A DNA stretch of 64,000 bases, taken from Salpingoeca rosetta. Its lineage: Eukaryota > Protista > Choanoflagellata. The first letter of the stretch is position 1; each line of letters begins with the position of its first letter. The position numbers were made by a program, and so were the translations under genes. The notes under the pieces are model-generated. The model ran no database searches and was not told the origin of the DNA. It saw only the letters and a program-made list of their open reading frames with translations. This document shows, piece by piece, positions 10,856 through 15,030 of this stretch. The DNA is taken from the NCBI GenBank assembly GCA_033442325.1, contig JAWQFM010000021.1, positions 465,452 to 529,451 of the forward strand. Reading direction: 5' to 3'.

Positions 10856-13800
10856 TCACACCCCGTCACCATCACCATCCACCTGTCTCTGTTGTGGCGT
10901 TGAAACAGGGTGGAACGCAGCGTGCAGGGCGATGTAGCCGCCTTGTTCGTAGACGACGTCTGTGTTGGCAAACTGCAGACCAGCGACAGTGGGCAGCGGC
11001 AGGCCTTTGGCCATGGCGCTGTTGAGCGCGGGAATCACCACCGCATCCAGCAGCTTGGCGATGATTGGGTTCAACGCACTGATGTTTGCGACGGGCACAA
11101 TCGACCACTTGAGCCTGAGGACGAGAGAAAGAAAAAGAAGAAGAAGAAGAAGAAGGGGGAAGGAGGGCAGGTGAGGCGGTGAAAGAGACAAGCAAAGGGG
11201 AAACAGCCTTTCACTCGAACAAGGAGATGGACACTCAACAAAGCACTCCCTTCAGCAAAACCTCACTCCCTCACAAACACACACACACACACACACACAC
11301 ACACACAACACACACACACACACACACACACTCTCTCTCTCTCTCTCTCTCTCTCTCTCTCTCTCTCTCTCTCTCTCTCTCTCACACACACACACACACA
11401 CACACACGCAAACGCAAACGCACGCACGTGGTGGTGAGATTGATGGCGGAGATGGCGCCGGTGAGGGTGGTGTTGGCGAGGGAGACGTTGCCAGTAATGG
11501 CAAACTCAATCTCTAGCGTCATCGCAGGGATGCGCTGGGGTGATGGCATGCCTGCAGGCACCGAGCCGTCACAAGGAGGGTTGCAGCGGGTACATGAGAG
11601 AAACATGAGGACAACAACAGGGGCAAGACACTTGCCCTGCGACGCTGCAAATAACGGCAGTTGTGTTGAGTCCTGTTGCATGACAGCGTCGAGCACACCT
11701 GTCAGCAACGCAGCAGTCACCATCACCGTGGCTGACTGCCAACCACCACCACCACCACCCTTGTCGACAACGGACCTTGAAGAACAGAGACGTTGATGGA
11801 GTAGAGAAACCCTGCGCCAATGCCCTCATTTGGGATGACGGTGATTGGAGTGATGGTGGACGGCTCCATGTCCACTTGCATTGCGTCATTTGGAAACCTG
11901 TGGAGGGTGACATGAGGACAACGAATGGGGGTGGGAACAGGATGTAACAAATGCAGTACAAGATGACACAAACGCAACACCAGAAGCTTGCTTGCTGACA
12001 GTGCCCCCCCCACACACACACACGCATACACACACGCGCACACACGCACACGCACACGCACAACAAACTCCTGCACACACAACCACAGACGCATACATGA
12101 CAAACACACCCACACAGCTCACTTCTGGTAGAGGTTTGGCAGCACGTAGCGGAAGAAAGTGGTGTTGAGTTGAAAGTATGGCAGAACAGCAGGTGGGAGG
12201 TCAGCGTTGGTGATGGAAAGGTTGAAGGCACCCTCAGTGTTGAGCACAGATATGCCAGAGTTGAGGAGGAAGGGGTCAAGATACAGCACGAGCGAGTGGC
12301 GCGTGCTGTTGAATGTCGCCGGCAGTGAGGTAGGCAGCGTGTGATGCGGGTACGCGCTCTCCTGCGGGTGTGTGCGGTCAAAGATTTCGGCACCAGAGGC
12401 CACCATCACCGCACGCGTGTCCACAAAGACAGGGAGCGAATCCGTCGTGTTGGTGGTGATGTTCAGTGACGACAGCAGTTGGCACGCGCCACCCTGCGCA
12501 CACACACGTAGTTCGATGTGGCCGCCACCACACCCGCCCTGATATTGGAGTTGAATCGGATAGAAGACGGATGCGCTGCCATTGAATGGCGGCGTGCTGT
12601 CCGTGTGGTGCTCAACCCAGCACATGCCCGGGTTGTCTGTGCACGCGAACAGCGGCGTGGTGTGTGTGTGTGTGTGTGTGTGTGTGTGTGTGTGTGTGTG
12701 TGTGTGTGTGTGTGTGTGTGTGTGTGTGTGTGTGTGTGTGTGTGTGTGTGTGTGTGTGTGTGTGTGTGTGTGTGTGTGTGTGTTGTGTGTGTGTGTGTTT
12801 GTGTGTGTGTGTGTGTGTCATGAGCCAAGACAGTGAGACGGTAAGCAAGGCACGGCCCAGCATACAGTGCAGGGTGTCAAATGAATACACCATCCACCCA
12901 CACAAGCCACGATGGCTGCTGTCGCGTACGCATTTCGAGGTGGCCTGCGGTGCCGCTCGGCGCTGTGATTTCGCCGGCCTGGTTGAAGTGGATCTTCAAC
13001 ACAGCATGCGGCGTGTAATGGGGGGCTCTGATCAGTCACATGGCTTCGGGTGCTGTGTGGACTGGGCAGGACGTGCGACGCACCGCGCACCCTTGCTCGT
13101 ACAGCAATAGGTGCAAGGTTGCAACCCTCCTCACACACACACGCACACACACACACACACATACGCGCACGCTCGCACATACACACACGCTCACGCTCAC
13201 ACGTTGTCACACCTGGAAGTAGAAAGTGCCATTGGTTGCTGGCTGGAAGAACCCCGCAATATCGATACTCTCGTATGCGCCAATGCTGATGTCAAAGTCT
13301 GCGTGATGCGATGGTGAGCGAAAGGAACAATGGTGAGTGCATCGAGCAGTACAGCTCAGTCTCCCCTGCACTGACACACTAGTGTGCACACGCAGTACGA
13401 ATCTACACACATGAACATGAACGCAACGGAAGACACACACAAACCACACACACACACACGCACGCACACGCACACGCACACGCACACACACACACACACA
13501 CACACACACACACACACACACACACACACACACACACACACACACACACACACACGCACACGCACACGCACACACACACACACACCGTCAATGATGATTG
13601 GGGTGGCGGTTCCGGAAAAATGATTGTCAGAGTAGTGAAAGCCGGACATGCCACGCGTGTTGGTGACGTTGATGAGGCCATAGTCGATCTCCGTCGTGTT
13701 GGAGAGCGGGATTACCAGTGGAATGGCAGGCAGCAACTACAAGGCCGAGATGCGCGTGAAGCGTGCACGCATGAGTCGTGTGTACGCACGTATGTGCATG

Positions 13801-15030
13801 TATGCGTGTACGTGTCTGCATTTGTGCATGCATGTGTGTGTACGTGTCTGCATGTGTGCATGCATGTGCATGCATGTGCGTGTGTGTGCACACGAATGTG
13901 TGCGCGCTCATGGACCACACAACGAACACACGCATCTACACACATATTGACACAAGCACACTCTCAGCACCTTTGCGGCAATCTCATCAATGCCTTTGAC
14001 GAGCGCTGTGGAGATGGTGGAGGAGAAGAGATGCTCCAACGGCTTGTGCAGCATGTTCACAATGTCCTAAAATCAAAGAGGTGACACATGATAGTCAGCA
14101 GGTTGAGCAATACTGTCACACATACGTGCACACATATGAACGCACAATTACAAACACCAGCACACACACACACACATGCGCACACGCACACACCAGCGCA
14201 CACGTAGCTCATACCAGCGTACACGTAGCTCACACCTGGTAGAAGCCGCCAGCGCCACCATCCAGGATGATTGCAAAGTCCTTGATGTTCACGTCGCACT
14301 GCGCAACCGTCAGCCCCAGATGACCGTGATCAGAGGTCAGGGCGATTGCAATGTTGAGCGAGGTCTGGTTGAACACATCCTTTGCGGTGCCATGGATCTT
14401 GATCAGCTGCCCTTGGCACGATGCATGCAACCAGCGGATTATGAGTGGGCTGGAACAAGCAACAAGAACGTTGACCAACAGAGCGAGAGAGAGAGAGAGA
14501 GCACACGAGAGAGAGCGAGAGAGAGAGAGCGCGAGAGAGAGAGGGGGGAAGGAGTGCAACCAACACACACACACACGCATGACACATCGCACCCCGTCAT
14601 GGTAGCGCCAATTCATGTTGGCAAGGATGATGACGCCAGTGCCCGCGATGGTCACCACGTTGGGTGGGCTGAGATCGATGGCCTCGCTGCCAAAGTCCAG
14701 CTTGGTCAGCGTGATGTTGGACACCTCAACCACGATCCCAAGCTCTTCCACCTTGATGTCGGGGATGGTGACGTTCATCATGATCTGGTGCAGCTCCGGC
14801 AGGACGAGCGCCTCGATCTCAGTCAGCCCACGCTCCGCAACCGCAAACGTCAGCGAAGATGGTCGGCTCGCATTTCGCTCCCCAACACCCTCCAGGCCAC
14901 CAACCCCACCAATCCCACCAACCTCATCCCGCGCCGACGCCGCCACCGCCAGCAGCACAGACACAAACAAAAACAAACGCCCGACGCCAAGAAGCAGCCT
15001 GCTCATCATCATCATCATCATCATCATCAT
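10856..15030 (-). CDS. BPI/LBP (TULIP) lipid-binding protein with inserted PA14-like domain
   Basis: Signal peptide. BPI N-barrel ([40 protein letters not shown]). Central IDYGLI. C-barrel ([49 protein letters not shown]). The start lies within an (ATG)9 run at 15004-15030. Confidence 0.88.

Follow-up and report, generated by a model that had tools for sequence, protein, structure and literature searches.

BPI, LBP and CETP are textbook extracellular lipid binders of animal immunity and lipoprotein metabolism, and to our knowledge their history before and outside the animals is poorly known. BPI uses its cationic character for lipopolysaccharide (LPS), and CETP and PLTP are acidic, glycosylated, secreted lipid shuttles. 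The conserved disulfide in the N-terminal barrel (Cys135-Cys175 in human BPI) is a feature of the animal plasma proteins and not of the Pfam families. A review of the TULIP proteins records a disulphide between elements 5 and 6 and does not mention PA14 (PMC5507252). Here, we describe a gene within a stretch of 64,000 nucleotides of Salpingoeca rosetta DNA (assembly GCA_033442325.1, contig JAWQFM010000021.1, positions 465,452 to 529,451), referred to as the window, in whose coordinates all positions are given. The coding region (10856..15030, minus strand) comprises ten exons with 2025 nt and encodes 674 amino acids plus the stop codon. An earlier reading made from the letters alone (the sequence-only reading) had proposed a secreted BPI/LBP-type lipid-binding protein carrying a PA14-like domain in its central sheet, possibly from a choanoflagellate. 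The host is indeed a choanoflagellate, as the product corresponds to S. rosetta PTSG_07848.

Either single exons or the public PTSG_07848 protein (P0032) served as the query in all database and structure work, while the joined exon model was built locally, aligned to homologues by MAFFT and compared with P0032. Scanned exon by exon, Pfam returned only weak BPI matches (LBP_BPI_CETP with E 0.015 in exon 2; LBP_BPI_CETP_C with E 0.009 in exon 7 and 2e-4 in exon 10) and no PA14 match, the exon pieces being too short, and a phmmer search of the PDB sequences with exon 7 gave no match. On P0032, both BPI domains exceed their cut-offs, with LBP_BPI_CETP (PF01273) at 40.6 bits against 28.8 (residues 76-224) and LBP_BPI_CETP_C (PF02886) at 78.8 bits against 23 (residues 418-641). 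A family profile of 14 sequences retrieved BPI, LBP and CETP from the PDB sequences with E-values of 1e-52, 4e-46 and 1.7e-11, respectively. The AlphaFold 2 (AF2) model of P0032 has a mean predicted local distance difference test score (pLDDT) of 76.9, values of 72-94 for blocks of the insert and a predicted template modelling score (pTM) of 0.65. It superposes on human BPI (1bp1) over the whole boomerang (model range 55-658), with a Z-score of 30.5 and a root-mean-square deviation (rmsd) of 3.0 Å for 448 of 456 residues; the Z-scores with 4m4d and 2obd are 26.0 and 20.2. Foldseek returned the same two groups of matches as the structure alignment, namely the BPI type and PA14. PTSG_07848 thus has the two barrels of a BPI/LBP/CETP-type TULIP protein, which supports the BPI/LBP assignment of the sequence-only reading.

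The alignment with LBP (4m4d) runs up to IDYGLINVT (chain index 215) and restarts at SGAEIF (index 226), so that about 145 residues stand in place of a turn of some 10 residues in LBP. In the AF2 model, these residues fold into an all-beta unit, with the IDYGL strand (249-252) on one side and the strands of residues 404-421 on the other. The predicted insertion site is accordingly the turn that links the first central-sheet strand after the long helix of the N barrel to the second, and the claim of an insertion within the central sheet stands.

To what the insert corresponds is most clearly seen in the structure alignment. Its best match is 6qe7_C, with a Z-score of 17.2 and an rmsd of 2.2 Å over 131 residues (model 260-397), followed by 6qdi (16.7), 6m8m and MpPA14 (about 13, with a top value of 13.3), domain 1 of the anthrax protective antigen and Flo1/5 (about 12), and Epa1/9 and KmBglI (about 11). 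An independent ESM Atlas model gave the same answer: when one row was taken per family set among the 30 nearest models, all ten listed rows were PA14 clusters, with TM-scores of 0.73-0.79 over residues 255-405. Sequence similarity is far less telling. The Pfam PA14 model (PF07691) gave no hit on the S. rosetta protein at E-values up to 1, and PA14 chains appeared in the family-profile search of the PDB sequences only with E-values of 0.056-0.74. The sequence alone is thus insufficient, and the PA14 identity is established by the fold together with the homologues. Five of the latter exceed the 24-bit cut-off of Pfam PA14 (P0006, 46.4; P0010, 34.3; P0007, 33.8; P0015, 30.7; P0003, 27.6), always between both BPI domains, and two of them, P0006 and P0007, also exceed the cut-off for GLEYA of the PA14 clan. 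The S. rosetta insert itself matches the PA14 region of the Monosiga brevicollis protein with an E-value of 3.9e-47. Combined, the models depict residues ~258-402 as a complete, separate PA14 beta-sandwich inside the BPI central sheet, in agreement with the PA14 assignment of the sequence-only reading, for which a check on predicted structures had been asked.

The conservation of the family is concentrated in this insert. In the alignment of 14 family sequences, 21 of the 23 invariant columns fall in the insert (residues 255-373), comprising L255, G266, Y269, F274, Y293, S295, G300, G330, L332, E333, N336, G338, M339, C340, W341, Q367 and G369-G373. Across the aligned family, conservation is thus higher in the insert than anywhere else, the lipid-binding barrels included. 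When the insert is aligned with three canonical PA14 domains encoded in the same genome, the column of the Asp-Asp (DD; DcisD) pair, which canonically follows the G-x-Y-x-F strand and reads GDD or SDD in L007 and L008, contains NQ in PTSG_07848, as had been noticed from the sequence, and DQ, KQ, TQ, KH, SQ or DS in 12 aligned relatives. The motifs NPGMCW and QxGCGGG are absent from the three canonical domains. These two segments probably lie at the sites of the two sugar-binding loops of PA14 lectins such as Flo5 and Epa1. Each segment contains one invariant Cys (C340 in NPGMCW and C370 in QxGCGGG), which suggests that a Cys340-Cys370 disulfide probably ties both loops together. A second Cys pair, C380/C386, is present in most members.

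Outside the insert, the protein differs in character from the bactericidal members of its fold class. PTSG_07848 has an isoelectric point (pI) of 4.8 overall (4.79 for the mature form), and its N domain has a pI of 4.78 with 11 Lys and Arg residues compared with 23 Asp and Glu. Only one Cys lies outside the insert (C182), and with this single Cys in the N barrel, the BPI-type disulfide is absent. The sole strongly hydrophobic segment covers residues 10-32, followed by AASA|RD, with the top Kyte-Doolittle windows at 10-14. It looks like a signal peptide, in line with the secretion proposed earlier. The protein further contains 18 NxS/T sequons, and no hydrophobic C-terminal segment was noted, the tail being acidic. 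By these sequence features, PTSG_07848 appears to lack the positive charge and the disulfide that mark the N domain of bactericidal BPI and to be closer in character to the acidic lipid shuttles.

The fusion is not restricted to S. rosetta. A search of 1.84 billion representative proteins with exon 7 (170 aa) matched 25 proteins, including ten full-length homologues (563-741 aa) that match from query residue 1, that is, from inside the insert; nine of the ten match over the whole length and P0021 over residues 1-48 only. Besides S. rosetta PTSG_07848, insert-bearing proteins were found in M. brevicollis (XP_001749971.1), the sponge Oscarella lobularis (XP_065830919.1), Paratrimastix pyriformis, Kipferlia bialata (two proteins), Aduncisulcus paluster and Chilomastix cuspidata, in assembly GCA_006365095.1 (contig VFQP010012766.1, L009:978-3203; 741 aa in a single intron-free open reading frame (ORF)), and among environmental Tara Oceans, JGI and Logan sequences. 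The insert therein occupies the same site across Holozoa, Metamonada (four genera of anaerobic, bacterivorous flagellates) and environmental eukaryotes, and the closest proteins lacking it are from Anaeramoeba and Paratrimastix. A purple acid phosphatase gene adjoins the homologue at L009. The 1535-aa protein P0037 (A. paluster GKT14446.1) shares a 90% cluster with the 658-aa PA14-BPI protein P0021, and may represent a gene model in which two family members are fused or stand in tandem.

An unrooted tree was calculated from the BPI columns only, with the insert columns excluded. Even so, the insert-bearing sequences cluster: the choanoflagellates fall into one group with Oscarella and a Tara sequence (support of 93/95), and the fornicates form a long-branched group with 100/100. 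One long-branched environmental sequence without the insert is nested among the insert-bearing ones, reflecting either loss of the insert or misplacement. The best tree requires at least two changes in insert history, and a single origin of the insert would be compatible with the well-supported branches. In the S. rosetta genome (55.4 Mb in 68 contigs), a search with exon 7 revealed no second PA14-BPI gene, returning the gene itself and one match with an E-value of 0.069. One other BPI-like locus exists (G000:C3:2386054-2387139; L003 and L004), two exons of which match LBP_BPI_CETP_C with 54 and 26 bits. It probably carries no PA14 insert, because exon 7 does not match it. The other PA14 domains of S. 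rosetta reside in unrelated large genes. The PA14-in-BPI family is evolutionarily old and small.

Taking fold, insert and distribution together, the most likely role of PTSG_07848 is that of a secreted lipid carrier or extractor, docked via a PA14 module whose binding site departs from the canonical one, a putative function to which we give about an even chance. The protein would enter the secretory pathway, because it combines an N-terminal hydrophobic signal and 18 sequons with the lack of a second hydrophobic segment, and it would carry or extract lipids outside the cell or in a lumen. In the PA14 module, the LE(M)HNPGMCW and YQxGCGGG loops would form a second, family-specific binding site, by which the lipid-binding boomerang would attach to a surface polymer. 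Its ligand would most likely be a carbohydrate, recognized by a chemistry other than the usual Ca-dependent Asp-Asp type. Since all named hosts are bacterivorous, the handling of bacterial envelope lipids during prey capture, digestion or sensing appears the most plausible setting. A cationic bactericidal action like that of human BPI seems unlikely because PTSG_07848 is acidic.

Several points weigh against this assignment, in addition to the failure of Pfam to detect PA14 in the S. rosetta protein itself. None of the aligned members retains the Ca-binding DD pair, which weakens any claim of lectin activity. The AF2 model was derived from an alignment of 14 sequences only and reaches a pTM of 0.65, and the signal peptide and the disulfide were assigned by inspection of the sequence, not by a dedicated predictor or from model coordinates. 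The bacterivore pattern is drawn from about eight named taxa, and the support for expression consists of the public annotation and conservation.

Innate-immune-style pattern recognition, the dual lipid/glycan role proposed by the sequence-only reading, is a possible alternative that we regard as distinctly less probable. The BPI part would then bind bacterial lipids (such as LPS or sulfonolipids) and the PA14 domain would be a lectin for bacterial glycans, and the protein may feed into the control that bacterial lipids exert on S. rosetta development. Such a role would suit a protein whose closest solved structures are BPI and LBP, and whose insert has sugar-bound MpPA14, Epa and Flo among its top structural neighbours, many PA14 domains being lectins. 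The family's named hosts are bacterivores, and the host here is S. rosetta, in which rosette development responds to bacterial lipids. However, the N barrel is acidic (pI 4.78) and shows no BPI-like cationic character, the DD pair is absent in all members, and no paper was found that ties PTSG_07848 to a phenotype. Moreover, members also occur in metamonads and a sponge, which form no rosettes, and what the family conserves is therefore not a role specific to rosettes. BPI-style recognition of bacterial lipids is in itself doubtful, because the N domain is acidic and contains a single Cys.

Somewhat less probable again, and unlikely in our view, is that the PA14 insert serves as a structural or regulatory module instead of a ligand-binding lectin, shaping or gating the lipid pockets near the barrel interface or docking to a receptor or a partner TULIP protein. 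The position of the insert in the central sheet between both barrels and the missing canonical sugar/Ca site are in line with this idea, and the extreme conservation of the Gly-rich loop and the Cys pair would suit packing or gating. A parallel is KmBglI (3ac0/3abz), a GH3 enzyme with an inserted PA14 domain that matches at a Z-score of 11.2 and in which this domain shapes the enzyme pocket. Against this idea, the conserved loops probably correspond to the solvent-exposed ligand loops of PA14 lectins such as Flo5 and Epa1.

The docked lipid carrier that we prefer can also be drawn in a far more specific form. The family would then represent ancient secreted lipid carriers of bacteria-eating eukaryotes, with a new, Ca-independent PA14 site (NPGMCW/GCGGG) for a bacterial surface polymer, and the S. 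rosetta protein would be the extracellular carrier or sensor taking up bacterial lipid cues (sulfonolipids, lysophosphatidylethanolamines) from prey membranes. We consider this full scenario very improbable as stated, and the link to the rosette-inducing lipids is speculation.

The gene model underlying these results shows GT-AG borders and matching phases at all ten exons on the minus strand. Exon 1 (14593..15030), identified by exon chaining and a Kyte-Doolittle profile, contains the (ATG)9 start, the signal-peptide-like hydrophobic stretch (residues ~10-32) and the beginning of the N-terminal TULIP barrel. Exon 2 (14236..14406) continues the N barrel, and its acceptor cag|CTG yields WRYHDG|LIKIHG, matching M. 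brevicollis. Exon 3 (13971..14066) encodes the long helix of the N barrel according to exon chaining and the AF2 model. Exon 4 (13586..13736) carries the end of the N barrel and the central-sheet strand IDYGL, and then proceeds into the PA14 insert without a break. Exon 5 (13213..13298) lies entirely in the insert, as does exon 6 (12930..12993), in which the canonical DD position reads NQ and which ends at a corrected donor at 12929 (gtacgc). Exon 7 (12123..12636) runs continuously from the end of the insert (NPGMCW ... QGGCGGG ... C380/C386) through the resumed central-sheet strands and the Pro-rich linker to the start of the C barrel. The C barrel is completed by exon 8 (11776..11897), exon 9 (11428..11551), with a corrected acceptor at 11552 (cctgcag), and exon 10 (10856..11114), which also encodes the acidic tail and the TGA stop.

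The coding sequence of the PA14 insert thus begins within exon 4, takes up exons 5 and 6 and ends within exon 7, and it spans 12434..13667 on the minus strand including introns (P0032 residues ~258-402; 258-405 in the structure alignments and 255-405 in the ESM Atlas). The sequence-only reading had placed an in-frame insert of four exons at ~13655-12440, close to these limits, and the peptides it quoted are present as written. This naive 736-aa exon model was rejected after alignment to the homologues, which revealed errors in two places. Exon 6 ends at 12930 and not at 12891, whereby 13 codons are assigned to the intron and the invariant LEMHNPGMCW is obtained. Exon 9 starts at 11551 and not at 11698, which removes 49 codons. 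A WLVWVD stretch that resembles the PA14 motif lwvdG is intronic, and hence no part of the product. The corrected 674-aa product is identical to P0032 (PTSG_07848, 673 aa, annotated as hypothetical protein) save for one extra N-terminal Met. There are nine consecutive ATG codons at 15004-15030 on the minus strand, compared with eight Met residues in the public protein; the difference reflects either variation of the trinucleotide-repeat length between assemblies or another choice of start codon.

Both BPI/PA14 junctions are internal to exons (4 and 7), and the fusion is therefore independent of any splice call. That it is an artefact of two merged genes or of introns read as exons can be dismissed as barely credible: the naive exon model was indeed too long by 13 codons in one place and by 49 in another, but each domain junction lies within one exon, the corrected model equals the public annotation, and at least 13 homologues of other eukaryotes, some of them intron-free ORFs (L009), share the domain order with no gaps at the junctions. 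Both corrected introns contain frame-preserving alternative splice sites, a GT donor at 12890 (+13 codons) and an AG acceptor at 11699 (+49 codons), and the corresponding minus-strand stretches (12891-12929 and 11552-11698) are both open in frame. The long splice forms would disrupt the invariant LEMHNPGMCW or add a Cys-rich loop that is found in no homologue.

Upstream of the BPI-PA14 gene, a divergent protein kinase gene is located at about 15540-17654 on the plus strand, with an ORF at 15789-17654 that matches Pkinase with an E-value of 5.8e-35. Its likely first exon, containing the glycine loop, ends near 15609, only some 500 bp away from the start codon of the BPI-PA14 gene, so that a common bidirectional promoter region may serve both genes. 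Further downstream lies an fn3-containing gene (4656-5465, plus strand). No sign of a functional link to BPI-PA14 was observed for the neighbouring genes. The exons are short, and long microsatellites of the (GT)n/(CA)n and the (GA)n/(CT)n type lie in the introns and the upstream spacer (11250-11430, 12660-12830, 13440-13590, 14480-14570 and 15100-15480), which produce many long spurious ORFs on both strands, for example a 477-aa ORF at 14176-15609 on the plus strand.

With regard to novelty, the sequence-only reading knew of no description of this fusion. Indeed, our literature search for PA14-BPI fusions or the locus tags found nothing relevant, the term PA14 mostly returning the Pseudomonas strain of that name. 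The architecture itself is not unique, however, as at least 14 such proteins are deposited in public databases. They stand there as hypothetical or domain-named proteins, and the M. brevicollis entry carries the PA14 and both BPI Pfam domains. PA14-BPI is accordingly an unremarked subfamily and not a new kind of system. The locus defines this subfamily, in which choanoflagellates, a sponge and metamonads share one additional domain that is always inserted at the same position. The insert is more conserved than the barrels, which points to a specific second ligand that has so far not been sought. PA14 biology in turn gains a variant without the usual Ca site. The protein thereby becomes a concrete candidate for a means by which bacteria-eating protists, the closest relatives of animals among them, make physical contact with bacterial envelopes, and S. 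rosetta is genetically tractable.

In comparison with known systems, PTSG_07848 shares the two-barrel boomerang, the central sheet, the Pro-rich linker and, by prediction, the secretory routing with human BPI and LBP (1bp1, 1ewf and 4m4d). It differs from them by the 145-aa PA14 insert, its acidic character, an N barrel with a single Cys and an identity of only about 14-19%. CETP and PLTP (2obd) have the same fold (Z-score of 20.2), and their acidic character fits the charge of PTSG_07848 better than that of BPI does, although they contain no inserted domain and their sequence match is weaker (E 1.7e-11 vs 1e-52 for BPI).

For the insert, the closest match is the PA14 domain of the clostridial RsgI anti-sigma proteins (6qe7 and 6qdi; Z-scores of 17.2 and 16.7, rmsd of 2.2-2.7 Å over 131-133 residues). 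These, in contrast, are extracellular polysaccharide sensors of bacteria that are joined to a transmembrane anti-sigma factor, with 14-15% identity and no lipid-binding partner domain. The PA14 lectins, namely MpPA14 and MhPA14 of RTX adhesins (6x7j and 6m8m), yeast Flo1 and Flo5, Epa1/6/9 and Cea1, share the beta-sandwich (Z-scores of 11-13.3, 130-140 residues) and have conserved loops at equivalent sequence positions, whereas their Asp-Asp pair is replaced by NQ in PTSG_07848, and NPGMCW and QxGCGGG are specific to the PA14-BPI family. A precedent for the architecture of PTSG_07848 is the GH3 beta-glucosidase KmBglI of Kluyveromyces marxianus (3ac0 and 3abz; Z-score of 11.2), where PA14 is likewise inserted within another domain and not appended, the difference being that the host domain there is a glycosidase and not a lipid-binding TULIP fold.

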